A stretch of 64,000 bases of DNA from Paragordius varius (GCA_964247055.1 OZ176050.1:9238001-9302000), one strand, 5' to 3'. Shown: positions 1 to 48,488, counted from the first letter of the stretch. Numbers and translations are program-made. The notes: generated by a model from the sequence alone, not told the origin.

Positions 1-733
1 CATTTAACACTTGAATCATAATACATTTGACCTGATATATTTGTATGAAGTTATACCTGTGCCTCTGTAAAGGGCTTTTGCATATAATCCAATAAGCTTG
101 CCAAATCTTGTTCACAATATTCCATAACTAAATATATACTCTGTAAACTATAAATCAAAAGTTTAACTTATCATAATTTTTCCCAATCGCTATATCATAA
201 ATTTTAATTATATTTGGATGAGGGTCATCATCCTTAAAATAAAGAATAAAAAACCATGGACAAATGCAGCAGTAAAGATATTTCTCGCAAAGAAGTAAGG
301 GGAATTTCTTTATCCGACAAATTTTCACTATTTGTTCGAATTTTTTTAAGTGCGACGATTTTCTGACTTTCCTTATCAAGAGCCTTATATACAACTCCAT
401 ACGTCCCTTCGCCAAGTCTTTTTAATTTTTTATATTTTTCAATCGATTTACAATTATTATGCTTGAACTATAATTAAAAAATGCGATTACTAAAAAATTC
501 TTATCTAACAAATATAATTTATTTGAAGAATCCTCCATATCTAACATGTGTTCTTATTTATTTGCGCAAGCTCTATTTTTTTGCAAACCTAACCTGGTTC
601 CGTTTACATTAACTTTGATTTGATACCATTTGCTGTTTATAATTTAATTCTTGGCTATTTCAATTATGGACAAGTAAATATAAATAAACTTAATATTTAG
701 ATCTTTGTGTTTATTGTTTGTTGTCTATTTATT

Positions 734-3700: not shown

Positions 3701-5140
3701 ATCCGTTTCATGATGACTGATATAATTGATTTGAAAGAAAATGGTTGGGTTCCACGTCGAGACGAAGATGCTCCCCGCACTTATGAGGAGATTGAAATGG
3801 AAATGGCTCGCGAAAATGAGGAAACCCGGAAAATGGCAGCGAGTGTTTTGAAACGACACCATTTACAATCTAAGGGTGGTGGTAATGTTAACCGTATGGG
3901 AGAAACACCCAGCCCTAATTTGTATAACAATAATACAGCTGGCTCAAATTCAATCATGAGTTCAGGTTTATCGTCGAATGCCGGTATGTCCCCAATGCCC
4001 GAGTTTAAAAATTTAGCTCATAGGCCAGTCGGTATTCATAGTAGGCAAGAACAAAATTTGGATACGATTAAACTTGGACCCTCTAAATGGGTTCGTAATA
4101 CTTCAACTAATGCCAATAAGCAAATCTCAGCAAACGTTAAAACGGCTTCTCCTGCATCTACCACACCTGTAAGCGTTTTGTCGAATGCTACGCGAAACGC
4201 AACTGCAGAAAATATTAATGGTTCATTTGATGCATTTAAGAATGGCAAAACTAATATTTCCAAAGGTGCTATTCCAAACGTTTCAATGGTCCCATCGGCT
4301 AATGCCGAGCGCAAAAAAAGCCCAGAAGACTTTTTAGCCTCGCTGAAATACTTTCTCGAATCTGGGGAGCCCGAAGATATTACCGAATGCTTTGATTTCG
4401 ATATACCTACCCTTATTAGGGATTTCGATGTAATTTATGGCATTTTTGATCACAATGAAACCAGACCTAACTATACGAAGGCTCTTTTTACATTTTTGCA
4501 AAAATCGCAGTGCGATATTAGCGATATTCAGAGCTTAATTGATTATTTGATAGATCAAAAAGAAAATTTTGATTTCCCCCTTCTTTTGCAATATGTTGCT
4601 GATATTATCATTCCCATTTACGAAGAATCAGAATACCACCCGTATCTTCCTGAATTGTTATCGTCCATTAAAAATAAATTAACACCGCTAGATTATACCT
4701 CTTTGTGTTTAGCCTTGTATGAAACTACCACATCTATTTCTACTGAGCCATCTACATTTTCCAACGAAATATATAACATTTACATTGAATCCTTGAACGG
4801 CCTGTTTAATGGTAAAACATTGACCCCTTCCGAAATATTCGCAACAGATTCGGCTCTCAAAACATACCTTATTGATCTTTGTTCGAACATTTTGCGATAC
4901 ATGCGCAAAACAAGCACTGATGGAAACGATACATTGTTAAAATCAAAGGGCGATCCTTTGTTCGAAGCCCTAAAATTATTTATGCATACAAACGAATCTT
5001 TAATTACATCCCCTACGCAAACTGTACTTTTATTACCAATCCTTTCCCAAGTTTTGCAGCAAAAACACAAGAGTGATGTATATGACCGCCTTCAACAAGA
5101 TTCCGAACTTGCAAATATTTTCAATGGATCCCAAGTTTAA
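734..5140 (+). CDS. eIF4G: Eukaryotic translation initiation factor 4G, 1468 aa, intronless CDS
   Basis: Long ORF with a low-complexity P/N/Q/S-rich N-terminus and an eIF4E-binding motif YTKTDLL (YxxxxL-phi). It contains a MIF4G domain (KVKSLLNKISPNNF...IFHKALLEPAFVDMYA...RYLGNIKFVSEL...SSRIRFMMTDIIDLKENGWVPRR) and a divergent helical, probably MA3-like, C-terminus. The first ATG is at 734; the ORF track starts at a GTG at 707. Confidence 0.95.
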   Translation: MSVSDKKQQKKPHTPFSLNHFSNYGQLNGEMIALQVNSQQNSHPKSHSNNTHRPNQYYKTIESDMNVIQSANPSLGIEKNNFKTNGLPLNNIMDSNMMNNLNCLHIIPVSQTPLFYVPTMNNFKFLQSPNNQYPPQFPYPLNANPNLLFGNVPQQLFPVNLVAVSSHTTIPNSTYSYGQSMAINGNESTIIESSNSGTISSVAQVVGTMSLPFNNDNSKNVSYIPNHLQQSQSYAAPAFPTQIPFPLAYQNIPSPHNTNNAPSLGYPNAPFINLLPVGSVSGAPVAPFIPSAFTNHPLIPNLQNLQTLPVIASAGVGSTYNGSVNNGMALGTTSLISSLTTTTHTTTLSAMMNSSNISSSIISSQHNHHQQAPPPYVIASLVSTLPQSSTTMLIHNNNANIVRSKAVNASSSGEEGGIHVLPNATTPLINTSSSYNSIALPLSHPMGHPTSNWQPSTHHTSKPIKKSHALNITHPETGAIFTAKELAASEPDKNSIEFKNKITQVALTEKEEVLDASVIPPDEEIKTKDAFPAVKDILESDYKNIIVTEAAPTLVGVKEVEMVSNDIHINISNEDDSLKRLDKIDQTDAKVDSIQCSIVTTTTTSDVPIDNKNISIPIKSLETSNAQPGLNTNFAPSTALLSDFQTPATPLPNNKISPTTRILPSSSQRFIQYTKTDLLKIKTLVDVNECPVSLVHYDFYVATNRMYNNNMGNKRNMGGYGMVNDMRMAFPRNSVYGRSMMTPEPLPTTKQVEYIPAKDAWRASHRRTETNPETAETEMIVGKVKSLLNKISPNNFNQLLDEFKSLALHINSLDRVTGVVKVIFHKALLEPAFVDMYALLLQALCACCEPFKPLCIILTMCQKQFEAIKSEKSEEELEFEKKIQEATDENEKRILEEDLNEYILKERDRYLGNIKFVSELLKLQLLTPKIFLDCLVTLYNVKTDIAYEGLCNMLRYAGKDFESHPGQRIVEEMINNFKKLSKDNNISSRIRFMMTDIIDLKENGWVPRRDEDAPRTYEEIEMEMARENEETRKMAASVLKRHHLQSKGGGNVNRMGETPSPNLYNNNTAGSNSIMSSGLSSNAGMSPMPEFKNLAHRPVGIHSRQEQNLDTIKLGPSKWVRNTSTNANKQISANVKTASPASTTPVSVLSNATRNATAENINGSFDAFKNGKTNISKGAIPNVSMVPSANAERKKSPEDFLASLKYFLESGEPEDITECFDFDIPTLIRDFDVIYGIFDHNETRPNYTKALFTFLQKSQCDISDIQSLIDYLIDQKENFDFPLLLQYVADIIIPIYEESEYHPYLPELLSSIKNKLTPLDYTSLCLALYETTTSISTEPSTFSNEIYNIYIESLNGLFNGKTLTPSEIFATDSALKTYLIDLCSNILRYMRKTSTDGNDTLLKSKGDPLFEALKLFMHTNESLITSPTQTVLLLPILSQVLQQKHKSDVYDRLQQDSELANIFNGSQV
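2750..2770 (+). other. eIF4E-binding motif of eIF4G (YTKTDLL)
   Basis: TAC ACC AAG ACT GAT TTG CTA matches the canonical YxxxxL-phi motif and lies upstream of the MIF4G domain, as expected. Confidence 0.75.
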
Positions 5141-7052
5141 TAACCACATTATTATGTTTATATCCAACTGCGACTGACCTATACATTCTTTGTGGAAAAA
5201 TAATTTAAAACACCAATTTTTTATTACATACAAAAAAATTTTTAGTACATGTTAATTGGCTAATTAGTTTGTTATTTTCAAGCTAGTGAGTTTCGAATTA
5301 TTTTTTGCCTTTTACGAATTTTATTTTTGGCACATAGAATTGATTATTTTAAACTTCCACCCCTATTAGTCATCACTTTCATAAATTGAGCACATTTGTA
5401 ATTTATTTATGTTTTTTGGATTTCTTAATTTGCTTTTTGGTTTGAATTCATATTTAATTGATATATTAACAAGGCTCATTGCCCATTATATATACCCATA
5501 TGTCTTATAGTATTGTCCTGCATTACACCATTATCTTACATTTTACATATACATACATTATTGGTACATATTTTTCGGATTTCATTCAATAAAAAACATG
5601 CAACATGTCCCAATCATTTTGGGTGTTTAAAACTTTGATCCACGCAATTTACGACATAATAGTTAAAAAATATTATCTTACTTTTTGGCGTCTGCTCTGC
5701 TAATAAATAATACGCTTTGCTAATAGGTGTTATTGTAACTTACAGCAGACTTCCTTTTACTGAAGAAATATAACAATGTTGAATGCAAATTTTTTATTTT
5801 TTATCTATCATTTGGCAATTTTTCTTTCAATTTAAATAAAAAAATAGGTTGCGACGCGCCATTGGATTGGTTATATCTAAGTATAACTATATTATCTTCT
5901 CCTGGGCACGCTTTACGATAATTTTATATTATGTAATCAATATATATGCTACTTTTACTATAATATACTGCTGATGCATGCATGTTTCTTAATTAATTAT
6001 TTTTATAAATATGTTATTAAGTAAAACACCTCTTTATCCCTACCTTATTATATCATAATACATAATTATTTTATTGCCATTGTTTGATTGATTGATTTTG
6101 GGATATAGAGATACATCAAAATTAATTAGTATATATATGTGTATGTGAAACTCTGTATGGATAGGAGAGTTTTAAATTGCATCGTTGTTTTGCTATATAA
6201 CACAAAATACACCCCTAAACTTTTAAGCAAGCACTTGTGTATAAATAAAATGGAGACATACATAATTGATGCTGCATATTTTGTCCATTAAGTAACAAAC
6301 ATATTACATAAATGTATATCCATCTTTTTATTATTATACATACATATATATTTATATATTATACCTGATGTTTCGCGCAAACAAATATACTTATTGTATT
6401 GAAATATATATATACACTATTATGAAACCACAAACATGTCGCATATGAAAATACCGAAAATGACAACAAGGGAAATAAATTTAATTTTATAATTTTGCTT
6501 TTTATCAGAGCTTTTAACGAAATCATTAATGAAAGATTAGAATAGGGTTTTTTCTCATATAAAATAAGGAACAGGTTTTACTCCTATTTTAAACCGAAAT
6601 TTGAGTTTCGGAATAGTGAGGCTTTCTTTTCATTTTATGCTACCAGTCCTCAGTTATTTATTCTTCATTATTTATAGCGGAATAATCAAAATAATGCCGA
6701 TCGCCAGAGATTACTTATAAATACATCCCATTTTTTCTAGGGTGATAAGATAGTAGTTTTGCATTTTTTTACAGTCTTTTGTTACGAATCTATAAAATAT
6801 TTGTTTAAGCCCTTACATTTTTCGAATGCGGTCCGTCAGTTATCTGTGTAGCAGACCCCTGGTTTATAAAATTTAATAACTTTAAATTAGTATTAATAAT
6901 CCGGACACTCACCTAAAAATTTTAAGGGCCGAAATAAATATTTTTCTTGTATCAAGGGCCACTCGCCATATAGTACCGACAAATATTCCAAAGCTATTTG
7001 ACATGTTATTTATACCTTAAATAAGTAAGTACATACAAAAATGAATGAATAA

Positions 7053-8189
7053 CACTGCTCAACAAGGTTTTGCACCACCCCATTATTTTTGCATTTTCTG
7101 ATACCTAATGGCATGGAAAGGCCAAAACAAAAAAGAAAATTGAGGCCACCAATAGGATTTTTCCGAAATTTAATTTTTTAATTTGTATTTAATTTAAAAA
7201 TAACAATCATTCCTCGTGTACATATGTTTAAATATTCAAACGAACAAGTCGATACAAGTAAATTCCATGCATGAATAACAAAATTCTAGGCATTAAAAAA
7301 GATACTAAACATGCTAAGAGCCAAAGTATTAAAAATCTAAAAGGGGCTTATGTATCGTGTGATAGATCCGGGCGGCTGCACAAGCTCTGCATATCCCCCA
7401 AGCGATCCAATTATGCCAGATATGGCAAAGATAACAATAAGTAATCGTAAAGCCCGATAAGAGAGACTTGCAAGCAAAATCCAGGCAAATTGACATGTCA
7501 AATTAACCAATTCACAGAATAAAGTTAGAGAAATTCTACAATTAAATTGAATAAAAAGATTAGGTAAATACAAATGGTCCAATCCCATAATAGTAAATTC
7601 TACTAAGAGTGGCTACACAACATCCATCTGAAATTAAAAATACAAAACAACCAATAATTTTAAAAAATAAAGTATATCCACTAGATATAATAAAGGATTT
7701 TTTGTAAGAACCAACTCAAGAAAAAAGCCTAATAAGTACTTGAAAGAACGAAAACTAACAAAAAAAAATATAGCCTATCTGAAAGCCGAAGGTTTAAACC
7801 ATAGAATCCCTTTTTTGGTATATTTTAAAAATTTTTCTATACGTATTAAAAATTCACTTGAAAGAAAAAGACTAAATTTTGACGTTTAAGTCCGTACTAT
7901 TTTTTTCTCTCTGATATTTAAATGACATATTTATATTCAAAAGATAGAGTTTAAAACGCTTTAATAAATGATATTAAGTTTATAATATAATAACATTTTA
8001 TTATAAAGTTATATTTAATTTCTCTCGATTTTCTCTTGTTTTTGAAAAATTGAAAAACCTATGATATTTCAAAATTCTGATTGGCGGGATCAAAAAATTT
8101 TTCACATTCGGTTTTAAAACACTGAAATTAGTCATAATTTAAAAGTTTGAGTGGTGGTGCTCAAAAATGTCCAAATTTGTCGACTAGTG
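7053..8189. mobile_element. Non-autonomous DNA transposon (~1.13 kb) with CACTG...TAGTG termini, copy 1
   Basis: Near-identical to 22947-24070. Imperfect TIRs (CACTGCTCAACAA vs reverse complement CACTAGTCGACAA), with TAA on both sides. Superfamily is ambiguous (Tc1/mariner with TA, or CACTA/Harbinger with TAA). Lies between hAT-type end fragments (~6830-6862 and ~8217-8261). Confidence 0.8.
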
Positions 8190-9199
8190 TAATTCAAGAC
8201 AATATAAAACACTTTTAGGGCCGCGCTCGTAGCTGCGGTTTGAGTACAACTGCATTTTATAATTTAAGTAAAAATTTTATTATATATATGAATTCTATTA
8301 TTGCTCTTGTGGTAAAATGCTATGGTCATGAGAGCATTAAGATTTCTACCCATTAATAATTATTTACCCGTAAAACATATGATTGATAATGAAATAGACA
8401 AACTGTCTACAATGTATAAATTAAGAGATTTATTTCGAAGCTTATAATATTGTTTAATTAATAAACACCGTTAACTTTAAAGTTATCGGTGTGCCCAATG
8501 TTATGGTGTTTATTCAAACATGTTTACTTATTTATTTAAAAGAGAAATATATATTTTTATAATATTTCAAGATTTTTCATTTTTTTCATGTAAATTCCCA
8601 TCTTAAAACATTATTCCTTTGATAATTATAAAATAACGAACTTTAAAAACTCGCTACTTTGACAAAATATTAATTTCAAGACAGCCTGATACCAAATATA
8701 GTTTTTTGAAATATAAAGGAGGTGTTTTTAATTTAATAAACCTTAAATTCATTAGCGTATCGGATTTCTTGCGGGGGGGGGGGGGGCAGGAGGCAAATAT
8801 TTTGCTTTTATACGCGATCGGCACTCCTAATTAATTTATTATGATCTCATAATTTTGGCGAGCCTACAAAACATAATGTTACGCGGGTTTATGGGTATAA
8901 AGAATTCCACCAAATTTAAACAATGTTAACAAAAAATAATTATCCAGCAATGATTTTATCATAAAAAACATAAGCAATTATTCGGTGAAAATTGCCAAAA
9001 AAAATTATTTTTGACATCGGGTATATAAGTAATAAAAAACCATGTATAATTTTGTCCTTATGAAGTAAAGAGGTTTGAACATTTGTAAAACTATATATAT
9101 TTTTACCGTGGTAAACATGATAGTGTAAGTTGGAGCCTGCGAAGCTGCTATTTGAAAAAAGGGCAAACAAAATTGTGATCCATATATTGGATTATTTCA

Positions 9200-21208: not shown

Positions 21209-21807
21209 TACCATTTACACTTCAAGAGTATCCTTGAACAATTCAAGTTGGTCCTTGAACAATTCAAGTTGGTCCTTTAACTTTTTTGTTTTGTTTTTAA
21301 CTTTTATCAATCAAATCGAAAATAATTCGTCTATTTTATTGTTTTTAACCTTTTTTCTATTATTTAACATAAATTTTAAATCGATATCAACTTTTAATCT
21401 TTGAAAACCGTATATCTTTATTAATTTCTTAAAATAAATTTAAATATTTATAAGATTTTAACACGAAATGAAAAAATATATATTTCTGGGTTATTAAAAA
21501 ATTTTTCATTAAAAACATTTAAAAGTCAATAATTTTGTTCAATTGAAAAAAATAGTTTTAAGAAAAAAAATTGGTTTTTCAATAAAAAAATTTATTTTTA
21601 AATGAATAAATATATAATAAATAAAGAAAATTAGGTTAATAAATAATTAAATAAAAAAATAAATGCAAAAATTATGGTTAAATCAAAATTTATAAATTTT
21701 AAGGACCAACTTGAACTGTTCAAGGACCAACTTGAATTGTTCAAGGACCAACTTGAATTGTTCAAGGACCAACTTGAATCAAGGACACTCTTGAGGTGTA
21801 AATGGTA
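21209..21807. mobile_element. Foldback-like MITE (family Q) with 21-bp subterminal repeats
   Basis: TA|TACCATTT.CACTTCAAGAGT...ACTCTTGA.GTG.AAATGGTA|TA ends, with tandem CAAGGACCAACTTGAA(C/T)TGTT units facing outward at both ends. Confidence 0.85.
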
Positions 21808-22946
21808 TATTAATTACTTTTCTATAGATTAATTTTGGTAATTTATATTTCACTAAAAATGTGGAAAAATTTCCCCACATGAAAATGCTTTCAAAATTTT
21901 GGGAAACGTTGTTTCTATTTCTAAATTCCATTTACTTTTCTATTTTAAAATTTTTATTGCATTTCTTTTCTGTATTTAAGCAAGCCTTTTCAAACTTGCA
22001 TATTCATTTTCATTTCATTGCTATCTTGCATCGTTTTTTATAAATCATTCCCATAAAATATTTTCAAATCAACGTCATTAAATTTCCAACTGTTATTTTA
22101 TAGCACAATTCAATTATATTCGTATTTTAATAAAAAAATTAACATAAAATTTAAACATAATTCTAAGGATGACATCTTATGCTAAAAACTAAATTATCCG
22201 AAAAAATCGCTATTTTAAAAAAGAATGGGAAGAAAAATACTTTGTAAGTTGTTACCTGCCTTATATATAAGGACAACATAATTATAAAAATACAATATTG
22301 AAAGACATTTTACAGTCCATCATTCTCATTAATTACCAGAAGATAATGAGGAAAGAAACGAAAAATATAAAAAGACTAATATATTATACCAGAAAGAAAA
22401 ATCTATTATGTCAGTAGCTTTCTCCCAGGAAAATGCTGTAACATTAGCTTCGTATGAAATTTTTATATTTAGGAAAAAATATGAAACCGTTTACTGATTA
22501 ACTAATAAAAGAATGTCTAATAGATGGTTGACTTTTTATTTGATTTCCATAATAAAGATCAAATCATGAAGCAAATTGAAAAACTTCAACTTTCTGATCC
22601 AACATGTGCTCGACGCATTGAAGAAATGTCTAAATATAGTTTCAACAATCCGTGGCAGAAAATTTAAAAATATGAAAGATATCCACAGTGAATTTGGTAA
22701 TATTCTTTTGTACACCGCTGTGAGATGGCTAAGCCTTAGAAAATTAAATAACTTTTGTTTTAAGACATGAAATTCTATTATTTATAAAAGATAACAGAAA
22801 GTTTGACGAGGAAATTAATTACAAATGGTGGGTTTTATTAGCCTACCTTTGCGTCATTACTTATAAACTAAGTAATAATACAAGTCTTGAAGGGAGCAAA
22901 ATAATTACCCAATTAATCAAATATTGCTTTTAAAGAAAATTAATAA

Positions 22947-24070
22947 CACTGCTCAACAAGGTTTTGCACCACCCCATTATTTTTGGATTTTCTGATACCT
23001 AATGGAAAGGCCAAAACAAAAAAGAAAATTGAGGCCACCAAAAGGATTTTTCCAAAATTTAATTTTTAAATTTGTATTTAATTTAAAAATAAAAATCATT
23101 CCTCGTGTACATATGTTTAAATATTCAAACGAGCAAGTCGATACAAGTAATATTCCATGCATGAATAACAAAATTCTAGGCATTAAATAAGATACTAAAC
23201 AAGCTAAGAGCCAAAGTATTAAAAATCTAAAAGGGGCTTATGTATAGTGTGATAGATCCGGGCGGATGCAGAAGCTCTGCATATCCCCCAAGCGATCCAA
23301 TTATGCCAGATATGGCAAAGATAACTATAAGTCATCGTAAAGCCCGATAAGAGGGACTTTCAAGCAAAATTCATGCAAATTGACATGTCAAATTAACCAA
23401 TTCACAGAATATTAGATAAATTCTACAATTAAATTGAATAAAAAGATTAGGTAAATACAAATCGTCCAGTCCCATAACAGTAAATTCTACTAAAAGTGGC
23501 TACACAACATCCATCTGAAATTCAAAATACAAAACAACCAATAATTTTAAAAAAAATAAAGTATATCCACTAGGTATAAATAAAGGATTTTTTGTAAGAA
23601 CCAACTCAAAAGAAAAAGCCTAATAAGTACTCGAAAGAACGAAAACTAACAAAAAAAATATAGCCTATCTGAAAGCCGAAGGTTTAAACCATAGAATGCC
23701 TTTTTTAGTATTTTTTTTTAAAAATTTTATACGTGTTAAAAATTCACTTGAAAAAAAAGACTAAATTTTGACGTTTAAGTCCGTACTATTTTTTCTCTCT
23801 GATATTTAAATGACATATTTATATTCAAAAGATAGAGTTTAAAACGCTTTATTAAATGATATTAAGTTTATAATATAATAACATTTTATTATAAAATTAT
23901 ATTTAATTTACTCTCGATTTTCTCTTGTTTTTGAAAAAAAGAAAAACTTATAATATTTCAAAATTCTGATTGGCGGGGTCAAAAATCACCGGTTTTAAAA
24001 CACTGAAATTAGTTATAATTTAAAAGTTTGAGTGTTGGTGCTCAAAAATGTCCAAATTTGTTGACTAGTG
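22947..24070. mobile_element. CACTG...TAGTG element, copy 2, inserted in the hAT transposase
   Basis: Near-identical to 7053-8189, TAA on both flanks; it splits the hAT coding relic. Confidence 0.8.
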
Positions 24071-24614
24071 TAATATATAAACAAGATTTTATAAATAAAA
24101 CACTCCTACATTTTCCAACACTTAAACGATTCATGAGGAAAATATGGAGTTTACCGCTGAGATTAATTAAATAATAGACAATCATTTAACATTTTTATAT
24201 AATTAGATGAAATTCAGATTTCCATAACTAAGAAACATTAAAAATTGCTTCGTTGAAAATCCACGGCATATGGATATACCCAATATTAAACAACATGAGC
24301 ATTTCGGTTTTGATCAGGCGTCTATCATTGAAGAATTCGTAGATTTTAAAAATGATACCAAATCGGAGGCTATTTTTATGGTGAATGATACAGAACAAAG
24401 TGGGAAAAATGTGCCAAATAAATATGAAATTATAAAAAAAGTGCTCAAGTTATTCTAACTGTTTTTCCCCTAGTTTACACGTGTGAGACGGCATTTTCTA
24501 AAAAGAAGTATGTTAAAAATACGACAGAAATCGCATAACCGATGATCGTATGGACGACGTAATAAGATTGGCCTGTCATGAGGCGAAACAATTTGTCAAA
24601 AATTATTAGTAAAC

Positions 24615-25488
24615 ACTTCGATTCAAATTAGGATATCTAAATACCCCAGACTAAATTTAAATTATTTTTAAAAAACTACTGAAGGAAATGCTCCTAATTT
24701 AAATTTATGCTTCTATCTTAACACTTGGATACAAGACACTAATTTTAGTCCTTCGATTCAAATTGGGGTAGTAGGATACCCCAGGCCTGTTTAAAATTAA
24801 ATACTTTAAAAAGTATGGAAGAATCGAAACCATGGCAAAATTTTGCACTTATATAACATTAATAAACTGAAATATATAAGAAATGTTATTCAAAAATACT
24901 TGATATTACTTACTTTGAGCTAAAACTGAAAGGTAAAAATTTAGTCAACGTGACATGTGTCAAATTGTAAAATTAAAAAATAATACAAAATAAACCGCTT
25001 TTTCTATTTCAATCAATGTTAGATGTAATTATAAAAAATAAGCTTTAGTTTTACCCTTAAAATTAAATGACGATATTTTGCAAAATTTTTGTAAAATAAA
25101 AATGGCGTCGAAGTAGTTTGAGATGGAACTTTTTTTTCAAAACAAAATTTTATCAAGATATTTTGGCATATTTATATAGTATTTATCAGGATACAAGCAT
25201 AAATTTAAATTGAAACCGTTTCAGTAGATTTTAAAAAAATTTAATTTAAATTGAGTCTGGGGTATTTTGGATACCCCAATTTGAATCGAAGTGTTAAAAT
25301 AAGTAATATCAAATATTTTCAATAAATTATTTTAGAGATTTCGGTTTATTAATGTTAGATAAGTGCAAAATTTTGCCATAGTTTCGATTCTTCCATATTT
25401 TTTAAAGAATATATTTGTAAACAGGCCTGGGGTATTTAACTACCCCAATTTGAATTGAAGGACTCAAATGAATGTGTTGTACCAAGTG
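24615..25488 (-). mobile_element. Family P MITE containing a second family P copy
   Basis: Outer ends CACTTCGATTCAAATT (24615) and ...GTGTTGTACCAAGTG|TTAA (25488). The inner copy replaces ~300 bp of the outer consensus. Confidence 0.7.
24722..25293 (+). mobile_element. Complete piggyBac-like MITE (family P, 572 bp)
   Basis: TTAA|CACTTGGATAC...GAATCGAAGTG|TTAA; the subterminal inverted repeat CTTCGATTCAAATTGGGGTA is placed asymmetrically. Confidence 0.85.
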
Positions 25489-25667
25489 TTTAATGTAAAA
25501 AAGCTTTCATTTTACCCTTAAAATAAATGAAAACGATATTTTGCAAATATTTTTCCTTCAGTTTTATTAATTAAAATTGTCTGGTGTATTTAGATACCCC
25601 ATTAAGAAGTATTAAAATATTGTCATGCATACAAAGAACGTATGAAATTACTTGACGCTGTATAATG

Positions 25668-28600
25668 ATGAACTTTTTGAACATCTTTTACAGTGGTTTA
25701 TGTGATTCGCTTGTGCCCGTTACACATATAAATAATTATTTCAAAAATTCACGGTCACGTATTAAGTATAGTTTTATATGACGTATAGAATATCTATATT
25801 TAAAAGAGTCAGTCAATGTTGCATTTTAAATTGTTTAATTTTTTGGTATAGTATGCAAGGGTTATATAACATTTTGATTTATCTTGAATATATTTTATTA
25901 TTCTTATCAGGTATATAACATATATTTAAGATTTTTTAATCATTCAAGCGTATTGGAAATATTTATTTGTCAATTTTTTATGGTTATTTAAATCTTTGTG
26001 GATTTTGCCCGTGTTTATAGTTAGTCGTTTAATCAATTGTATATGGTTTCAGGTAGAATTTTTAAACTTTTCTTTTTCTTATTTAATTATATACAATATA
26101 TTATTAATGTTAAAAGGACATTGTCGACGAATTTTATAAATGCAAACATGCAAAACCTGTCCTAAGCGGAAATAAAAGTTCATTTATTCCGGATATCTTT
26201 TTTACTTTAACTCAACAATCAATATTTCTCATTCAAGTTTTTTATTATTAAGTTATAGTCTTACCTTTTTTCTTATATACCTATACCGCTATTTCCAAAA
26301 TTTATTACGTTGATGCATTTTTCATTACTATATTCAGTATATTCTTTTGAATATAAGTGGTCTAATTTTGGTAAGTCCTTTAAATTAGTTACTTTTTATT
26401 ATATTATGGTAATCCTTACAATTTAAAACAGCTATATTTAGTTTTAATTAAAAATCTAGTCTTAGTCATGTTTATAAATATATGTGTTGAAATAAATTGA
26501 ATACCTAACTCTATATAATCAGAATATCAAATATGATAAAAAAAATAAATGGAATAATAATTTTTTTTTATATTTATACGCATCTCGCCAAAAAATATTT
26601 TTTACTATATATATACAAATACATACATACATACACTGTGTGCAAAAAGGAGGATCATTTTGATCGAAAACATTTTTTTTTCATGAGATAGCTTATGACC
26701 AGCGAATTCATTCGCCGCCGAAATTATTATTTGTTGACGACCTTATTTTGAAATATTAAGAGAAAATCAAAATCGGGCAAAAAGTGAAAATTAAAGATAA
26801 TTAAATTATATTAAAATTTGAGATATTATGGTTTATTATTATTTGGTATATATTTTCAATATATAAATAGCCTAAAATTATATAGTTAGCGTTTCTATAA
26901 AATTTTAGCTCAAAAGATGGCGTTTTTTAACATATCACAAGACAAGTTTTTTTTATAAATATTTAATATAATTTTTTTAAATTATTTATTAGCTAAACTC
27001 ACTAATAAAATCTTAACATTCACATTTTATTCAGAAAAAAACTTTTATATCAAAATAAAACCAAAAAATATTGTTTTTTATGTTTAGATTTTTTTGTCAT
27101 CTGGTTTGTGAGTGTAAAAATTTATACTGTTTTATTTTGGAATCTTACATGAGTGTGAATTATTAGTGGAATACCAACAAACAATCCGTACGAATCCCAA
27201 TACAAATATTAATTTGTCATAAAACAGACTTGTTACAGGGATTTGTTAGGATTGTTGGTTGATATTCCACTAATTTAAAATCGTATTTTGCATAAATTAT
27301 ATACTTTATAATTCGCTATTATGTAAAACAGTATAAATTTTTTATACATTCATAAACCAGATGACAAAAAAATGAAAAAATAAAAAGCAATATTTTTTGG
27401 CTTATATAAAAGTTTTTTTTACTGAATAAAAAAGAGTTTAGCTTGAAAATTAAAAAATATTTTAATATAGTTTCATTATTTTTTTGACTTTTATATGTTT
27501 TAAAAGAAAAACGCCATCTTTTTAACTGAGATTTTCTAGAAACCTTATTTATGTGATTTAAGGTATTTATATATATAAAATATCTCTTAAAATGATAATC
27601 AACCATATCACAACTTTTATTATTATTTTTTGAATTATCCTTAATTTTCACTTTTTGCTCGATTTCGATTTTCTCTTAATTTTTTAAAAACTACGTCGTC
27701 AACAATTAAAATTTTAGCGAAAGATGGATTCACTGGTCATACATTAGCTATCTCATGAAAATTTTTTTTTAAAAAAAATTAACCCTCTTTTTTGCACACA
27801 GTATATATAAATATATATTATGATTGTTGTTATAATTATTCGATTTGTACCCAACAAACTTAAAATTCTTATAAATTAATGTTGAATATTATGACGGATT
27901 AAAGCCACACAAACGTTTTATGAGACAAACGGTTTATTATTAATTTTTAGATTGAGTCAACTCTAAAAAAATTTGCAAGCTCTATCGTGCGACTTGAATT
28001 AGTTTAGATTAGAAAATCATACACATTTTAAAGAAGGGCCTATATTTATTATCTCTTTTAGTTTTGGAGTTTACCGGATGGCAATCTAAATAGCAGTTTC
28101 CCAATTATTCAGTTTAATATTTCGCTTTTTATTTAATAGTTAGATTCAAATTTGGCTAATTAGTGACTGACCATATTTAAAATGCTATCAAAAAACTACT
28201 GAATGGGACGGTTCCAATTTAAATTTAGTTTTGAAAAAATTTCTATATCAAACTACTTCAACGCCATTTTTATTTTGCAACATTTTTGCATAATATCGTG
28301 TTTTTTTAGTCTAACGCTAAAATTGAAGTTATTTTTTAAATCACATATAAAATTATTATATCAGAAAAGGTGATTTATTTTGCATTCATATTTATGCACA
28401 CCATGTTGGCTGAATTTTTACCTTCATGTTTATCCATAAAATAAGTATTATCAAGTTTTTTTGATTAAATCTTTTTTATATTTTGATAATGTTGTAAATC
28501 CGAATTTTTGCAATGGTTTCAATTTATTCCATATTTTTTGAAATATTTGATTCTAAACAGACCTGAGGTCACCAACCACCTGAATTTTAAACGAAGGTTT

Positions 28601-30973
28601 ATAATGTTTTGTATCCAATTCATTGTTTCTTTACTTATTCAATTGTGCGATGTTTTGTATCCAAGTTTCAAATCAAACCAGTTATTTTGACATTAAAAAT
28701 ATGAGTTTGAAAATACTTGTTATTAAATACCGAGTTTCTAGTACATCGGCTGTGATTGTGCAGTGTAATTATAAAATTCAATTTTGTTAAATACTACGAG
28801 TGTAATCCAATATAACCTAAAATAACCCTTATGAAATATTGTTAAAATTTAAAATCACGGTTTTTTGAACAAATGTACTTTTTATAGCACATATGTAAAA
28901 TTATTATTCCCTAAATTCGGCTTTGTAGCCTAGGGTGGAATGTGTTTCTATGATTTTAGGGGGCGCATATACAAAAAATTAGAATGAAAACGAATACCAT
29001 TTTGATAAATAACTCACCTAAACATAAAATTATCGTATATTTTTTATAATAGGAGTGGCGCCAAATTGGCATACAGTGTACACATTTTTTTATCAATTCA
29101 TTATGTTGGTAGCTCAAAGGCTCTGTTTTGAAAAAAGCCTTGAGGAAAATACGATTAATTTTATAAATATATAGTTTTTAAATAAATTCACTAATATTAA
29201 TTATGATAAAGGTTTTGAGATTCATAAACGGCTTAAGTTAGTGGAGACGAATTGGCCATATTTTTTGGGGTTCGGATTACCACTTGCTGTTGTTACCCAT
29301 TTGCCGCACTCATACGTTATTAGGTTCTAATATTTTTTTTTATATAATTAAAATTATTTTATTAATTAAATTTATATTTTTAGTGGGATAGTATTTTCAC
29401 TGTTGTTTCCACTTTTTATTCTGAGTGCCACAGAAGCCAAACCTATTGCTCAAAATTTGTAATTAATTTCTTAATTGACATATTTAAATAGCAATTTTTT
29501 ATGTGTTTCATTAAAATATATTTTCATATAAATAATATATTTTTTAGTGATGGGCCAAGTTTGCCCATATTTTTACCATCGATCTATCTTGCGAATCTCA
29601 TACTCAAAATTACCAAACAAGTTGAATACATACCTACTAAAGGTGCGTGGCGTGCCTCACATCGACAGACTGAAACAAATTCCGAAACTGCTGAAACGGA
29701 AATGATTGTTGGTAAAGTCAATTTCCTTTTGAATAAAATTTCACCCAACAATTTTTGTCAGCTTTTAGACGAGTTTAAATCTTTAACTTTGCATATTAAT
29801 TCTTTGGACCGTGCTACTGGTGTAGTTAAACTCATTTTCAATAGGGCTCTTCTCGAACCTGCCTTTGTTGACATGTATGCACTACTTCTTCCAGCTCTCT
29901 GCGCATGTTGTGAGCCATTTAAACCGTTGTGCATTATATTAACAATGTGCCAAAAACAATTTGAAGCAATCAAATCCGAAAAGTCTGAGGAAGAGCTTGA
30001 ATTTGAGAAAAAAATTCAAGAAGCAACTGACGAAAACGAAAAACGAATTTTAGAGGAAGATTTGAATGAATATATTTTAAAGGAGCGCGATCGATATCTA
30101 GGTAATATCAAGTTTGTAAGTGAATTGCTTAAACTACAATTGTTGACTCCTAAAATTTACTTGGATTGCCTAATGACTTTATACAACGTTAAAACTGATT
30201 TTGCTTATGAATGTCTTTGCAACATGTTACGTTATGCCGGCAAAGATTTTGAATCTCATCCCGGTCGACGTATAGTGGAGGAATTGATAAATAACTTTAA
30301 AAAACTTTCGAAAGATACCAATATATCCTTACGCATCCGTTTCATGATGACTGATATAATTGATTTGAAAGAAAATGGTTGGGTTCCACGTCGAGACGAA
30401 GATGCTCCCCGCACTTATGAGGAGATTGAAATGGAAATGGCTCGCGAAAATGAGGAAACCCGGAAAATGGCAGCGAGTGTTTTGAAACGACAGCATTTAC
30501 AATCTAAGGGTGGTGGTAATGTTAACCGTATGGGAGAAACACCCAGCCCTAATTTGTATAATAATAATAATAATACAGCCGGTTCAAATTCAATCATGAG
30601 TTCAGGTTTATCGTCAAATGCTGGTATGTCCCCAGTGCCCGAGTTTAAAAATTTAGCTCATAGGCCAGTCGGTATTCATAGTAGGCAAGAACAAAATTTG
30701 GATACGATTAAACTTGGACCCTCTAAATGGGTTCGTAATATTTCAACTAATGCCAATAAGCAAATCTCAGAAAACGTTAAAAGAGCACCTCCTACATCTA
30801 CCGCAACTGTAAGCGTTTTTTCGAATGCTACGCGAAACACTGCAGATAATAATATTGGTTCATCTCATGCACTTAAGGGTGGCAATACTAATATTTTCAA
30901 AGGTACTATTCCAACCGCTCTAATGGTTCCACTGCTTAATTCTGAGCGCAAAAAAATCCAGAAGTCTTTTTAG
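25668..30973 (+). CDS. Chimeric EI24::eIF4G(MIF4G) gene; 7 exons; 1-nt frameshift near the 5' end with a downstream in-frame ATG (699 aa from 25778)
   Basis: Exons 25668(or 25778)-25910, 25931-26052, 26117-26236, 26259-26370, 29212-29323, 29384-29458 and 29548-30973, all with GT-AG introns and matching phases (2100 nt from 25778). The translation has EI24 hallmarks (QCCILN, LWILPVFIVSRLINCIWFQ-DI, FEYKW, NWPYFLGFGLP, VFSLLFPLFILSATEAK) and then continues without a stop into eIF4G sequence at ~29611. Expression is untested, so it may be a pseudogene. Confidence 0.75.
26634..27803. mobile_element. 1.17-kb Tc1/mariner-type non-autonomous element in intron 4 of the chimeric gene
   Basis: TA|CACTGTGTGCAAAAA...TTTTTGCACACAGT ends with ~190-bp imperfect TIRs (TCATGAGATAGC, GTTGACGAC, GCAAAAAGTGAAAATTAA). 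Confidence 0.75.
28170..28670 (-). mobile_element. Degenerate family P MITE
   Basis: AAAAAACTACTGAA..GGACGGTTCCAATTTAAATTT...CGCCATTTTTATTTT...TTTTGTATCCAAGT, colinear with family P. Confidence 0.55.
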
Positions 30974-31002
30974 CCTCGCTGAAATATTTTCTCGAATCCG
31001 GG
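29611..31002 (+). repeat. Duplicated eIF4G coding segment (paralogous to 2977-~4370)
   Basis: Direct nucleotide alignment begins at TACCAAACAAGTTGAATAC. A 1-nt deletion at ~30958 gives TAG at 30971-30973. After ~31002 the alignment jumps to the parental 3' flank at ~5650. Confidence 0.95.
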
Positions 31003-31333
31003 CAACTTGGCAGAACACAACGACATAATAGTTACAATATATTATTAATCTTTCTAACGTTTGCTAATAATACGCTTTGCTCAGAGTTGTTATTGTAACT
31101 TACAGCAGACTTGCTTTTAATGAAGAAATTTAACAATGTTAAACGCAAATTTTTTATATGTCTTTTGGTAATTTAATTTTTTATGTTGTAATTTAATATA
31201 AAAATATTCGCGACGCGCCATTGGATTAGTTAATTAACTATATTATCTTCTCCTGGGCATGCTTCATGATTTTATATTATTTAATCAATATAATATATTT
31301 TTACTATACTGCTGATGCATGCATGTTTATTAA

Positions 31334-31764: not shown

Positions 31765-31917
31765 TTCATTAATTAATTTTAATGATATCATATAAAACCT
31801 TTATTCCTACCTACCTATTATATCAATTGCCACCATTGTTTGTTTTAATTTTGGGATAAAATTAATATATTTGTGATACTCTTCAGTTCTCTTGATGGAT
31901 GGACGCAGTTTTTAATA

Positions 31918-32618
31918 TACCATTTGCACTTCAAGAGTGTCCTTGAACACTTCAAGTTGGTCCTTGAACAATTCAAGTTGGTCCTTTAACACTTCAAATT
32001 GGTCCTTGAACATTTCAAGTTGGTCCTTAAAATTTATAAATTTTGATTTAACCATAATTTTTGCATTTATTTTATTATTTATTAACCTAATTATCTTTAT
32101 TTATTATATCTTTATATTCATTTAAAAATAAATTTTTTTTATTTAAAAACCATTTTGTTTCAAACTACTTTTTTTCAATTTAACAAAATTTTTGACTTTT
32201 AAATGTTTTTAATAAAAAATTTAAATCAATAACCCATAAAACTTATATATTTCATTTCGTGTTAAAATCTTATAAATATCCAAAATTATTTTAAGAAATT
32301 AATAAAGATATACGCTTTATCAAAGATTAAAAGTTGATATCGATTTAATATTATGTTAAATAATAGAAAATAGGTTAAAAACAATAAAATAGATGATATA
32401 TTTATGATTTGATTGATAAAAGTTAAAAACAAAACAAAAAAGTCAAAGAACCAACTTAAAGTGTTCAGGACCAACTTGAAATGTTCAATGACCAACTTGA
32501 ACTGTTTAAGGACCAACTTGAATTGTTCAAGGACCAACTTGAATTGTCCAAGGACCAACTTGAATTGTTAAAGGACCAACTTGAAGTGTTCAAGGACACT
32601 CTTGAAGTGCAAATGGTA
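31918..32618. mobile_element. Family Q foldback-like MITE
   Basis: TA|TACCATTTGCACTTCAAGAGTGTCC...GGACACTCTTGAAGTGCAAATGGTA|TA with 21-bp repeats at both ends. Confidence 0.9.
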
Positions 32619-33204
32619 TAATATGTTTGTACTTTACAGTCATGTCTAAGATCGAATAAATTATTTATGAATGTCGGTATATAATACGAATGCGGAACGC
32701 CGTGCTTTTTGAGTTAAAATGCGGCCCGCGAAGCCATTGTGTTAGAATATCCTTTTCTATAAAATATTTTTAATGAATAACATATTAAAACCATGTTTTG
32801 TTTAGATTTTTTCCGACAGTATTTTTATACACAATTCTACATGTTTATGATCCAATTTGCGTTAAATAATTAATTTGAGATGAAAGTGGTATATTTTTAT
32901 AAATTTTATTATCCGTAACTATAGACTTTATAAGTTAGCCTCGAATATTAATGCGAACCATTGATAAAATAAAAAAATTATTAAATATTTTCTTAATTAT
33001 ACTTAAAAACCATAAAGTATTCTTCCAGTTAATAAAATATAGCTTTTAAAGAATTAATTATTAATGATTGTGTATTGGAATATATAGAAAATATTTTTAT
33101 ATAATCATTATAAATTCATAAAAAATAATATGCCAATATTACGTTGATAATGGTTAAAAGTTATTTTTATATCTTGTTTTAATATTTTTTATCAAAATTA
33201 AAAC

Positions 33205-41325: not shown

Positions 41326-43925
41326 ATGAAAGTTATAAAAGCTCTTGGTGTCATAGCCATTCTCATTACGATAATGGTTGAAGCTAGGTTTCTATCAGAC
41401 CCTACGAATGATAGCTTAAATAAAAATGAGGTATTTTTTTCAATTTCCTAAATAATAGAGAAGTGAGAAAAATTAGCATTACAGAGTGAGTTATAGATTT
41501 CTATTTTTCATTAAATATTGCCAGTAATACACAATAAAAATAAATATTATTGGCTTAAAGTTATATTTTAGCTTTTCTTGTGATGCAATAATTCTCTTTG
41601 CCTCATATCGCTATTTAATGAAAAACTTGGAATGTATTGTTAATCACACTGTGAAACTAAATTTCCATATATAATGTAAAATACCAAATAAAAGATAAAA
41701 TGTATAATAATTAGTTTCAAAAGATTCGAGATTTAGTATATATGTAAATCTGGAAAGGGCTTCGATGTTCAAAAAATGTGGAAGAGCCGGAACCAGGGTG
41801 GTTTCTAAAGGGTTGGAACCGAAACCGGTTTGATTCCAAAAAAAATAAAAAAAAACCGGGGTAGTTCCTAAAATTTTGGAACCGTAACCGGTGTGGTTCC
41901 TTAAATATTTAACTGTCGGAACAGGTTTTTTACATTAGGAACCGGTTCCATTTTGGTTCCCGATTTTTTATCGAAAGATTCTCATAAAACATTTTTACTC
42001 TAGAAGTATAAGTACCACTGATATATAAGGTAGCTTATTTTTTTCCGTTATGGGTTAATCATGGATGATAATTCATGGTTTTGTAAAACTTAGGAACTTT
42101 AAAATAGTGATACTTTATAATTTTTAAAACTAATAAAGAGAAGGCTAATAACTGGGGACTACAAGTAATGTCAACGGTAAATTTATTGTATGTGTATATA
42201 ATGATTCTATATATATAACTATATATCTAAGATAATTAGGTCTAATGTATTCACATATATCAAGGTGAGATGTTTGCTTTTATACAATTAACTTAAGGTA
42301 TAATATACCATTTGCACTTCAAGAGTGTCCTTGAACATTTCAAGTTGGTCCTTGAAAGTTCAAGTTGGTCCTTGAACAATTCAAGTTGGTCCTTGAACAG
42401 TCCAAGTTGGTCCTTGAACATTTCAAGTTGGTCCTTAAAATTTTTAATTTTGATTTAATCATAATTTTTGCATTTATTTTTTTATTTCATTATTTATTAA
42501 CCCAATTAAATATTTATTCATTTAAAAAAATTTTTTTATAGAAAACCACTTATTTGTTTCAAACTATTTTTTTCAATTGAACATTATTATTGACTTTTAA
42601 ATGTTTTTAATGAAAATTTTTATTTAATAACCCAGAAAACTTATATGTTTTTTCATTTCGTGTTAAAATCTTATAAATATCTAAAATTATTTAAAGAAAT
42701 TAATAATGATATACGGTTTCTCACAGATTAAAAGTTGATATCGATTTAAAATTTATGTTAAATAATAGAAAATAGGTTAAAAACAATAAAATAAATGAAT
42801 TATTTACGATTTGATTGATAAAAGTTAAAATCAAAACAAAAAGGTCAAAGGACTAACTTGAAGTTTTTAAGGACCAACTTGAAATGTTCAAGGAGCAACT
42901 TGAACTGTTCAAGGACCAACTTGAACTGTTCAAGGACCAACTTGAAGTGTTCAAGGACCAACTTGAAATGTTTAAGGACCAACTTGAACTGTTCAAGGAC
43001 CAACTTGAACTGTTCAAGGACCAACTTGAACTGTTCAAGGACCAACTTGAAGTGTTCAAGGACACTCTTGAAGTGCAAATGGTATAATAATAGTTACACG
43101 TGGTGGTGAGGTTATAATAATATAATAATACTACACACATATGTTAAAAGGTTAATATAATAATATATAACGAATGTTGTTTGTGCGGTTAATCTAATAG
43201 TATAATAAAAGGTTTATTCAAATTAGCCTGTCAGTAACCACTCTAACAAAGGCGTAAACTGGATAAATTTATCGTATTTTCCCTTTTCCTAAGCTATGAG
43301 ACTCCAATAAGTTTAAGGCTTTTTACCAGATTATTTTATCAATTAATAAGGTAAATGTACTTAACCTATGGATATAAACTTAAATAATTATGTATGTTCA
43401 ACATATAATACTATTTTAATCGGATACGAGAAAAAAATGTTATCATATGATCAATTTATATATATTTAAACATCAAATTTTTAAATTATGATGGTCATCC
43501 ATTGTGAAGGGAGATCAAAAATGTTATTATACAATCAAATTTAAAAAATAATTTAAACAATAAATTTTATTTTTTAAATATAAATACTTATGGGAACCAC
43601 TTATTTTGGAAGTGGAATCGGAACCGAGTTGATTAACCTAACGGATCCGGTTCCATGTGGTTCCGGTTGGAAGCCCTAATATACACAAAATTTAAATAAA
43701 ATATTATAGTTTAATTTATTTCTCTATAGAGGATTACATAATAACATAAATATACATTTATTAAATTAAAACATTTTTAGTTATCAAAGCCAAAAATTAT
43801 TGTGGAAATCTTTAAGGGAAATCATTATCCGCATAATCCAAGAAGTATTATTGATTGTTAAAAAATTAGGATGCAAATTTAAACTCTGCAATATGGGATT
43901 CGGAGAAAATTTTAGGCGCAAATAA
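41326..43925 (+). CDS. Small secreted neuropeptide precursor, CNMamide-like (minimal model 74 aa)
   Basis: Exons 41326-41430, 43781-43844 and 43870-43925 (25-nt second intron) translate to MKVIKALGVIAILITIMVEA-RFLSDPTNDSLNKNELSKPKIIVEIFKGNHYPHNPRR-CKFKLCNMG-FGENFRRK*. It has a signal-peptide-like N-terminus and a CxFKxCNMG motif like insect CNMa (CHFKICNM-amide). Extra exons in intron 1 are not excluded. Confidence 0.75.
41755..43678. mobile_element. Ac-like hAT non-autonomous element in intron 1 of the neuropeptide gene
   Basis: Right end GGTTCCGGTTGGAAGCCCTA and degenerate left end AAGGGCTTCGA, with clustered GGAACC/GGTTCC/AACCGG subterminal motifs at 41790-41965 and 43590-43670. No TSD found. 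Confidence 0.55.
42306..43084. mobile_element. Family Q foldback-like MITE (longest 21-bp arrays)
   Basis: TA|TACCATTTGCAC...GTGCAAATGGTA|TA, with about 9 units on the right and about 5 on the left. It is the source of the overlapping repetitive ORFs at 42845-43140. Confidence 0.9.
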
Positions 43926-46253: not shown

Positions 46254-48488
46254 TTATGACCTGGAGACTGTATTTAATTTGGTGGGTGTGGATATGAATG
46301 ATGTATTGCAAACAAAATTTTTGCCATCTTGTATGAGAATATAATAGGGTTGTCTTTCATTTAAAGAAGAGGTTGATGGTAATTGAGTTGTCGGACTAAT
46401 AATATTATTGCTAGATACTGAACGTCCGACAATTGTTTTATCAGAATTTTTTCCATCAATAATATTACCAATTGCAGTTTTGTTGATTTTTGTTAGCGCC
46501 GGTGAGGGATTTGAAATCGTAAGGTTGGTGGTTAATTGTTGATTTGCATCTAATACACATAAAAATAAAATTTAACTGCCTCCAATATTTTCAATAACTA
46601 AACATTGCTTTAGGGTAAAAAAACAGTATTATCAAGAATGTTAAATCGTATTTTACCTTGAGGTGTGTTGACCTTAAGGACTTGTAGTAAGGTTTTATCC
46701 AATTTATTTTCTTGTAAGTTTGTTGTTGTAGTTACTAATTGTATTGCTCTCAACAAATTTTGATTAGCAGTAGTAGATTCAGGGTTGTCATTTAAGTTAT
46801 TACCACTAATATGGCTTCCATGATAAAAGCGGGAAGAATCAGTGGTAGGCAATGGTAAAATTTGAGGAAATGTTTTAGCTGGATATAATTTAGGGATATT
46901 GCTAGCATTATTATTTTGTGCATTATTTAAATTTTGTTCTGTTTTAGCACCATGTTTATCATTGATCATATGATACATATTGTTCTCATGAGAGATTAAT
47001 TGAGCTTGTATATTCACATCATCCAAATTTTGTTGGCCCATTAATGATTCCAATGAAGTCTGAGTAGGTTCCATATTATTTTCCTCATTAGATTTTTTGC
47101 TGTTGAAACGACCACCAGTACCTCGGTTACGATTTAATGCATGTAAATGCCGTGATTCATGCATATATTTCTAGGTTAAAACAATAAATATTGTACTATG
47201 AAACTTTAATCTGAATATCTAAATATGGTTATTCCCTTATTATATAGTATAAATTAGATTTGTATGATCCCATATTATTTATATAATGTGTTTAACACTA
47301 TATTGAATATGTTTGCATAAAAGGTTACATTTTAGGGCATATTTAGTCAAAAAAATTAAATTTTCAGTTAACTCCAATAAATTTATGGGTATCTTTTAAT
47401 TGTTAAATCATAATATTTGGAATAGATTTAACTTTATATAAAAATATTTTACAAATGAGTTTTGACGAAAAAGGTTTGTAATAAAAATTTTACAATTTTG
47501 TGTTTCTTAAATCATATACCTTATAAGACAGGGAATGTTCACTTTTAAATATAAAGCAGAAGATTCCGCTATGCGGATTTAATGTAAAGCAGAAAACTGC
47601 GCATTTTTCAATCATTGCTGTCAGTCCTGAGCGAACTAGTGTCAAAGCTTTCACAAGTCCGGATATACAAGTAGAGTTCTTACTTTTGAATATAAAAGAA
47701 GACTCTAAAAGAGGGGTGACCAAAATGCGGCCCGTGAAAAATTTGGAATCACCAAAAAAATATAATGTTTTACAAAAATATATTGATATCTAAGTAAAAT
47801 TGATATTTCTTTTTTGAAAAGTCTTTTAAATAACAGCAATAGCAAAAAATGGTAAAATAAATAGTAATAATTTTTTTCAATTATTTTACAATCTTATGTT
47901 TGAAATGTAATATTGCCATATATTTTTCGAAAGCGCCGGATTTTTGAGTAAATGCGTAGGAAGCCATTTGTGCTGGACACTCCTGCTCTAAACTCTATAC
48001 ATTAGTGTATTTTATCTTTCTATGCCTGAAACATATGTTTCAGGTAAATGATCGCGTTTATTTAGCAAAGAAAAATTTCAAGATTGCTAATATATTTAAA
48101 GCAGTTAAAAGACAAAAATGATAAAACAAATTTGTTATACCCTCCTTTCTTTGGAAATTCGGCCTTGAGCTTCTAATTTTGCCCTAGCTTCTCTACGTTT
48201 TAATATTCTGGTATATTGTTTAGCATTCACAAATAAAGGCTCTTCAGTGGCATAACTTTGAGGATTGGGCCTAAAAACATAAGCCGGTGATGTTGGATTG
48301 TTTTGGAGGTTTATAAGATTTTTGGGATCTGAAATACCGTTATTCGATAGTATCTAAAAATTTAAAATATATACATATTTTAATAAGTTTTAAAAGGGTT
48401 AAATATCAAATGTATATACCATGTAGGCATCATTAATATTCACAATCGAAGAAACTGGAACAGTTATATATTCGTTTAAGGATGACAT
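46254..48488 (-). CDS. NFYA: Nuclear transcription factor Y subunit alpha (CCAAT-binding), ~363 aa, 4 exons
   Basis: Exons 48488-48420, 48353-48141, 47170-46657 and 46549-46254 (1092 nt). The core EEPLFVNAKQYTRILKRREARAKLEAQGRISKERR|KYMHESRHLHALNRNRGTGGRF is the CBF-B/NF-YA domain. The last exon boundary is less certain. Confidence 0.92.
47711..47985. mobile_element. 275-bp Buster-type hAT MITE in NF-YA intron 2
   Basis: GAGGGGTGACCAAAATGCGGCCCG...GGACACTCCTG with a near-perfect 8-bp TSD CTCTAAAA/CTCTAAAC. Confidence 0.75.

Follow-up and report, generated by a model that had tools for sequence, protein, structure and literature searches.

A candidate chimeric gene joining EI24 to the MIF4G core of eIF4G in Paragordius varius

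An in-frame EI24::eIF4G reading frame

Does a 64,000-nucleotide (nt) stretch of the Paragordius varius genome (GCA_964247055.1, OZ176050.1:9238001-9302000; the window hereafter) hold a working gene in which EI24 is fused to the translation-initiation factor eIF4G, or the remains of a duplication whose reading frame has stayed open partly by luck? EI24 is a multi-pass endoplasmic reticulum (ER) membrane protein linked to autophagy, and the MIF4G domain binds eIF4A, eIF3, and RNA. An initial annotation of the locus had claimed an in-frame EI24::eIF4G fusion and, from it, predicted a membrane-anchored scaffold for translation. The fusion open reading frame (ORF), the complete EI24 core, and the complete MIF4G domain all stood up to analysis, while the strength of the case had been overstated. 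On balance we lean towards a real chimeric gene, the frame of which selection would have kept open, and the product of which would carry a cytosolic eIF4G core behind a membrane domain of EI24 type.

The window is AT-rich (~27% GC), and the genome is animal-like. Reading of the sequence and a homology check place the chimera on the + strand at 25665/25668-30973, in 8 exons. Exon 1 (25665-25753) starts with adjacent ATGs at 25665 and 25668, ends in phase 2, and aligns with a second EI24 copy present further downstream in the window (copy 2). It is followed by exon 2 (25789-25910) after a 35-nt GT-AG mini-intron, exon 3 (25931-26052) after a 20-nt GT-AG mini-intron, exon 4 (26117-26236) after a 64-nt intron, and exon 5 (26259-26370) after a 22-nt mini-intron. 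Intron 5 (26371-29211) spans 2841 nt and is enlarged by very high-copy repeats at ~26485-27860 and 28060-28650. Exon 6 (29212-29323) carries the most conserved EI24 motif, NWPYFLGFGLPLA, and is separated by a 60-nt intron from exon 7 (29384-29458), which precedes the 89-nt intron 7. The last exon (exon 8, 29548-30973) begins with an EI24-derived part at 29548-29610, i.e. the last conserved EI24 segment, DGPSLPIFLPSIYLANLILKI, and continues into the copy of eIF4G. All seven introns run from GT to AG, the 14 splice dinucleotides and the frame are intact, and the spliced coding sequence of 2178 nt (725 codons) has its sole stop at the end. Retention of intron 7 would bring an immediate stop (TTG TAA) into the frame of the chimera.

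This model agrees in most respects with the initial annotation, which had described a gene of seven exons and six introns. Its EI24 exon anatomy holds and its count does not, one mini-intron having been missed. The introns do keep GT-AG and phase in the spliced model, the ATG at 29501 lies inside intron 7, and the 29458/29548 splice joins the EI24 part to the eIF4G part in frame. Alignment and the open 725-codon frame also confirm that the EI24 segment continues without a stop into the MIF4G part, with the junction at ~29611 (parental eIF4G 2977).

Residues 27-275 of the spliced chimera match an EI24 hidden Markov model (HMM), built from 18 full-length EI24 proteins retrieved with exon 6 as query, at 256 bits (E = 2.7e-80) over HMM positions 60-309 of 320. 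The alignment has no gaps at the exon joins and reaches the junction, with DGPSLPIFLPSIYLANLILKI covering positions 288-309, and the N-terminal motif in exon 1 aligns weakly to positions 7-31. With exon 6 alone, 135 EI24-family proteins are retrieved at E <= 0.001 from 1.84 billion representatives, and Pfam EI24 (PF07264) is passed by all nine exon-6 matches that were scanned, six of which are full-length. When single EI24 exons are scanned against Pfam, exon 6 is the only one to register (PF07264, E = 0.0015), though, short as it is, it stays below the 32-bit cut-off. Judging from these alignments, the EI24 core of the chimera is complete. As in EI24/PIG8 proteins (Pfam PF07264, CysZ/EI24 family), all of the conserved core follows in the right order, and the N-terminal motif is there; unlike in those proteins, the variable C-terminal tail, and no more than that, has been swapped for eIF4G sequence. 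Both EI24 copies differ from mammalian Ei24 (PMC4018778) in having no charged, importin-beta-binding-like stretch, HMM positions 32-59 being unmatched. Mouse and human Ei24 have six transmembrane segments and a cytosolic N-terminus (PMC4018778); a crude Kyte-Doolittle scan of the chimera, too coarse for topology, gives three clear hydrophobic peaks.

The eIF4G half derives from a parental gene at the start of the window, the ORF of which (707-5140, + strand) has 1477 codons in a single exon and a MIF4G domain at residues 791-1012. The source segments in the parental locus are 2977-4366 and 5651-5992. The first is copied at 29611-31002 (+ strand) with 92.8% nt identity, and its coding part closes with a TAG at 30971-30973. 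This stop results from a frameshift, the copy having lost 1 nt of the parental sequence near 30956 (30956-30973, + strand). In a public run, X2, a contig covering 30922-31233 has no indel relative to the window, which confirms the frameshift. A deletion scar at 31003-31019 (+ strand) marks the loss of 1284 nt (parent 4367-5650), which took the C-terminal 257 codons of eIF4G, its stop, and the proximal 3' flank, and the distal 3' flank is retained at 31020-31333 (+ strand; parent 5651-5992, 78% identity).

Within this copy, the MIF4G (HEAT-1) domain at 29714-30376 (+ strand; residues 56-276 of the exon-8 translation) is full-length against Pfam PF02854, scoring 86 bits vs a cut-off of 30.8 over profile positions 3-202 of 203. 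The exon-8 part also matches the human eIF4G1 PDB chains 6zmw_g and 8oz0_2 at E ~1e-44 (best 9e-45), and there are further matches to eIF4GII and eIF4G2 chains. A set of 13 animal eIF4Gs shares 103 conserved columns, of which the parent and the duplicate each keep 60. The parental eIF4G is itself highly divergent: its MIF4G region has <=35% identity to any animal eIF4G, with about 34% as the best value in the protein collection, and its C-terminus of 257 residues contains neither an MA3 nor a W2 domain by Pfam.

In canonical eIF4G, the eIF4E-binding pattern Y-x4-L-Phi lies upstream of MIF4G. The parent has a Y-x4-L-L motif, YTKTDLL, ~75 codons upstream of the breakpoint and outside the duplicated segment. 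Because the duplicate starts downstream of this motif, at parental nt 2977, it does not have the canonical eIF4G arrangement, and we predict that the chimera does not bind eIF4E.

The junction in genomic reads

The two halves meet between 29610 and 29611, where the junction splits a codon (AT/T) and keeps the frame, and the peptide across it is LILKITKQVEYIP. Such a join could be produced by misassembly, and the initial annotation had proposed that it be looked for in genomic reads. Run X2 provides an independent answer, as a 298-nt contig spanning 29414-29711 extends 197 nt to one side of the junction and 101 nt to the other. Its depth of 346 falls in the single-copy range of the other unique contigs (324-387), and its 3 differences from the window are variants of its own, which means that it is not merely the haplotype of the assembly. 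Since a contig built from reads runs across it at the depth of single-copy sequence, the EI24::eIF4G junction exists in the organism and is not an assembly chimera.

The one result pointing the other way comes from X3, a low-coverage run with an organism B label, in which none of the listed contigs bridges 29585-29610 and one contig follows the parent over 90 nt and the duplicate thereafter. This pattern is expected from a graph with k = 31 at 3-6x coverage, given that parent and duplicate share a 37-nt identical stretch near the junction, and with the X2 contig at hand we consider it highly improbable that the junction is absent from the organism.

The X3 contig in question is 578 nt long and covers 29611-29988 of the chimera. 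Its first 200 nt match nothing in the window, the next 90 nt have the bases of the parental eIF4G (29643 A, 29647 C, 29653 A etc., where the duplicate has G, G, and T), and over the remaining 290 nt it agrees fully with the duplicate. Because of the shared 37-nt stretch and the 3-6x coverage it could be a k-mer graph artefact, or else the sample itself could differ in its conversion or junction state. Sequence nearly identical to the locus, introns included, is also found at low depth in X3 and X6, two runs with other organism labels; either these labels are synonyms or close relatives, or Paragordius varius was a passenger in those samples. In X2, two of the differences from the window, at 29655 and 29658, are non-synonymous (Ala>Val and Ser>Leu) and fall in a WRAS motif that parent and duplicate have in common in the assembly.

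Origin by duplication

The second EI24 copy is found near the end of the window, where exons 1-5 occupy 63238-63958 (+ strand) and the gene runs past the window end. It is better conserved than the EI24 half of the chimera, to which it is 86.8% identical in exons and 79% in introns. The order on the + strand is eIF4G (707-5992), the chimera (25621-31333), and EI24 copy 2 (63191 onwards), with collinear anchors at 2977>29611, 5651>31020, 6401>33408, 16420>60958, and 25621>63191. The neutral divergence of the two halves also agrees, as the EI24 introns differ by 21% and the eIF4G 3' flank by 22%, and synonymous divergence (dS) is 0.24-0.35 for EI24 and 0.37 for eIF4G codons 1-100.

The locus therefore has the structure expected of a tandem duplication, i.e. 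parent A, a chimera made of the 5' end of B and the 3' end of A, and parent B, all on one strand, with halves of equal age. A single tandem duplication with one breakpoint per gene is most likely, as the most economical reading rather than a proven one. Specifically, one event would have copied a ~26.6-kb unit reaching from inside eIF4G (2977) to inside the last EI24 exon. The join would have set the 5' end, conserved exons, and splice sites of EI24 before the middle and distal 3' flank of eIF4G, and the duplication would have left an intact eIF4G upstream and an intact EI24 downstream (63238 onwards).

Tandem duplication that joins two genes is a documented route to chimeric genes in Drosophila (PMC5460883). 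As in those cases, the 5' end here comes from the downstream gene and the 3' end from the upstream gene, so that the start is taken from one parent and the end from the other, and the parents flank the product on one strand. Unlike the Drosophila chimeras, which are segregating polymorphisms, the present one is old (neutral divergence ~0.25) and has since been altered by an internal deletion, probable gene conversion, and the insertion of transposons; the Drosophila cases were also defined with RNA-seq, whereas ours is described from DNA alone (PMC5460883).

Two other origins are not favoured. For a retrocopy, no poly(A) follows 31333 and the gene order fits tandem duplication; intron loss is no test here, as the parental eIF4G is a single long exon. 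Capture by a Helitron or another transposon does not fit a block that is single-copy in X2.

A further pair of direct duplicates is present in the window, at 7044-8193 and 22938-24074 (both + strand), with 93.8% identity over 1.15 kb and no clear ORF. The first is found 1 kb past the eIF4G 3' flank, and the second precedes the chimera by 1.5 kb. Compared with other non-coding duplicated sequence (78-79%), these two are either younger or under stronger constraint.

Probable maintenance of the reading frame

The principal rival to a selected gene is a decaying by-product of the duplication, i.e. a non-functional or barely expressed relic that is open partly by luck and has had its MIF4G refreshed by conversion. 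We regard this as rather unlikely, in the first place because there is no stop in 725 AT-rich codons. In simulations of neutral decay (8-13% decay per branch, AT-biased mutation), the EI24 part stays free of stops with a probability of 0.002-0.014 and the eIF4G part with one of 0.011-0.047, the conversion tract described below being allowed for. The intact state of every splice dinucleotide argues in the same direction. Exon indels are also rare and in frame, with one (3 nt) in the 565 nt of EI24 exons 1-5 compared with 5 in 199 nt of intron. Lastly, omega is 0.17 in eIF4G codons 1-100, the unconverted 5' segment of MIF4G, which rejects the 0.55 expected if the parent alone were constrained (P = 0.004) and with it a freely drifting copy; for codons 300-350 the value is 0.05. 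Purifying selection acts on the unconverted MIF4G flank, and these results support an open frame that is better preserved than neutral decay predicts.

Several findings weigh against a chimeric gene kept by selection, and those within the gene speak for a relic. Compared with 18 EI24 proteins over exons 1-5, the chimera has lost the EI24 family consensus at 9 sites that copy 2 keeps, with 0 sites in the reverse direction, and its HMM score for these exons is 131 bits vs 182 bits for copy 2. Amino-acid change on the chimera EI24 branch proceeds at a near-neutral rate, and several near-invariant EI24 residues are altered (e.g. G to C, F to L, and A to P). By this comparison, constraint on the EI24 half appears clearly relaxed, with the fold-level match kept.

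In the eIF4G half, the tract at 29911-30510 (+ strand) is 2.5% diverged from the parent, compared with 10-11% on both sides, and contains a parent-identical run of up to 176 nt (permutation P = 5e-5). The dS of this tract is 0.053 vs 0.37 in codons 1-100. Because synonymous and non-synonymous sites are equally quiet, the tract is probably the product of gene conversion from the parent and not of selection on the copy, and it takes up ~600 nt of an eIF4G part of 1360 nt. Omega is 1.76 in the tail (codons 350-449), which ends in the frameshift, and beyond this lies the 1.28-kb deletion. A relic would also be consistent with an X2 allele that has two non-synonymous differences in 298 nt, and with the usual loss of chimeric duplicates (PMC5460883).

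The same can be said of the promoter position, which is occupied by a multi-copy transposon (24600-25600) lying directly upstream of the chimera and present in eight copies in the window. In X2, the depth at 25500-25696 is ~16,800, and the transposon stands ~50-fold over unique sequence. Since this element sits upstream and homology to copy 2 begins at 25621, only 47 nt before the ATG at 25668, the original EI24 promoter may have been lost, with the transposon taking the place of all that lay beyond about -50 to -170. None of the X7 reads, from an RNA-labelled run, are placed on the window, yet the parental eIF4G is equally missing. Across the RNA-labelled runs X7-X11, which carry the same species label, the fraction of sampled words found is 0.00 for the chimera and the parental eIF4G alike. 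As a housekeeping gene is missing too, these runs are uninformative on expression rather than negative.

Between the genes, homology of the two duplicated units shows in just two weak anchors (6401>33408 at 68% and 16420>60958 at 72% identity). A tblastx comparison of the two intergenic units yields nothing but repeat noise beyond the 6401/33408 anchor, and the NF-YA-like ORF at 46610-47164, which belongs to the second unit, is without a counterpart in the first. The rest of the intergenic units has been scrambled by transposon turnover.

The selection signals in the two halves, which are sharply different in kind, could also mean that the locus makes two products: a truncated EI24 paralogue that ends in a retained intron 7 (AQNL, then a stop), and a MIF4G-only paralogue with an internal start and a transcript of its own. 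The stop is reached directly on reading through the intron 7 donor, the ATG at 29501, which opens a 490-codon ORF, or a later Met could serve as the start, and MIF4G-only proteins of 300-530 amino acids (aa) form sizeable clusters in other eukaryotes. Against this, the donor, acceptor, and phase of intron 7 are intact and join the halves in frame, EI24 homology crosses the splice up to the junction, so that the short product would lose the last EI24 segment, and there is no evidence of an internal promoter. We consider two products improbable.

Predicted product and its possible role

In the interpretation we favour, that of a single chimeric gene, transcription would begin at the EI24 start and translation would yield one protein, with a predicted length of 725 residues. 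An EI24-type multi-pass membrane domain (residues 1-272) would be followed by an eIF4G core made up of a short lead-in, the full MIF4G/HEAT-1 domain, and a linker of low complexity; this core would lack both the eIF4E-binding motif and the eIF4G C-terminus. If the topology of mammalian Ei24 applies (PMC4018778), the tail would be on the cytosolic side. By analogy with MIF4G domains elsewhere, it would there hold or sequester eIF4A, eIF3, and RNA at the ER membrane.

The eIF4G part of the chimera resembles eIF4G2/DAP5/p97 and the middle fragment of eIF4G1, in that it starts past the eIF4E-binding motif and has a complete MIF4G/HEAT-1. Unlike eIF4G2/DAP5/p97, the chimera has neither MA3 nor W2, which Pfam does not find in the parent either, and it would place a multi-pass membrane domain ahead of MIF4G instead of being soluble.

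A fast-evolving EI24 half fits a role cut down to that of a membrane anchor, and relaxed constraint fits equally well. Likewise, the asymmetry between an EI24 half free to change and a MIF4G half kept as well as that of the parent fits a membrane tether without proving it. Taken further, a working gene could combine a degenerate EI24 anchor with an eIF4E-blind MIF4G into an ER-tethered platform or sink for eIF4A and eIF3, which would bias or restrain initiation at the ER; this specific function is speculative, and we think it unlikely as it stands.

Known systems and significance

An exact-product look-up of the 490-aa ORF found no record, and a word-indexed protein search with exon 8 (260-830 aa range) returned three distant MIF4G+MA3 proteins only. 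A protein search with the parental eIF4G gave nothing above 35% identity, the lineage being missing from the protein collection. The EI24+MIF4G architecture was not found in limited, non-exhaustive protein searches, Atlas look-alikes included, or in the literature, where the sole paper naming both terms was irrelevant. The formation route is already known, and the EI24+MIF4G combination and its membrane-tethered arrangement are undescribed for the eIF4G family within these limited searches. The exceptionality claimed in the initial annotation was too strong on several counts, given the known duplication route (PMC5460883), the near freedom of the EI24 half, the part of MIF4G conservation that conversion explains, and the upstream transposon.

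If the chimera is expressed, it would be a well-resolved case of gene birth in one step, with one duplication providing everything from the start and the splice sites through two folded domains to a 3' end. The two parents adjoin it for comparison, and the aftermath is legible in the internal deletion, the gene conversion, and the asymmetric rates of the halves. Expression would also make it a natural experiment on an eIF4G core that is fixed to a membrane without eIF4E binding. If it is not expressed, the locus is an ordinary duplication relic and chiefly a caution for annotation, as an ORF track shows a "490-aa eIF4G fragment" at this place and gene prediction would come up with a striking domain fusion.

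Repeats and other features of the window

The repeats of intron 5 reach word depths of up to 300,000 in X2, compared with ~350 for unique sequence. They are inverted internally, i.e. the ORF at 27319-27651 (- strand) mirrors 26560-26700, and many variant joints are seen in the reads. Arrays of 21-nt units are present at 31912-32624, 42300-43090, and 21217-21813, in both orientations. One frame translates as FKDQLEL/VFKDQLE and the opposite strand as SSWSLN, and the arrays have the look of satellite DNA or of a piece of a transposon. The ORF at 46610-47164 is on the - strand, has 184 codons, and is single-copy in the window. It contains the stretch HESRHLHALNRNRGTGGRF, which resembles the NF-YA/HAP2 DNA-binding motif.

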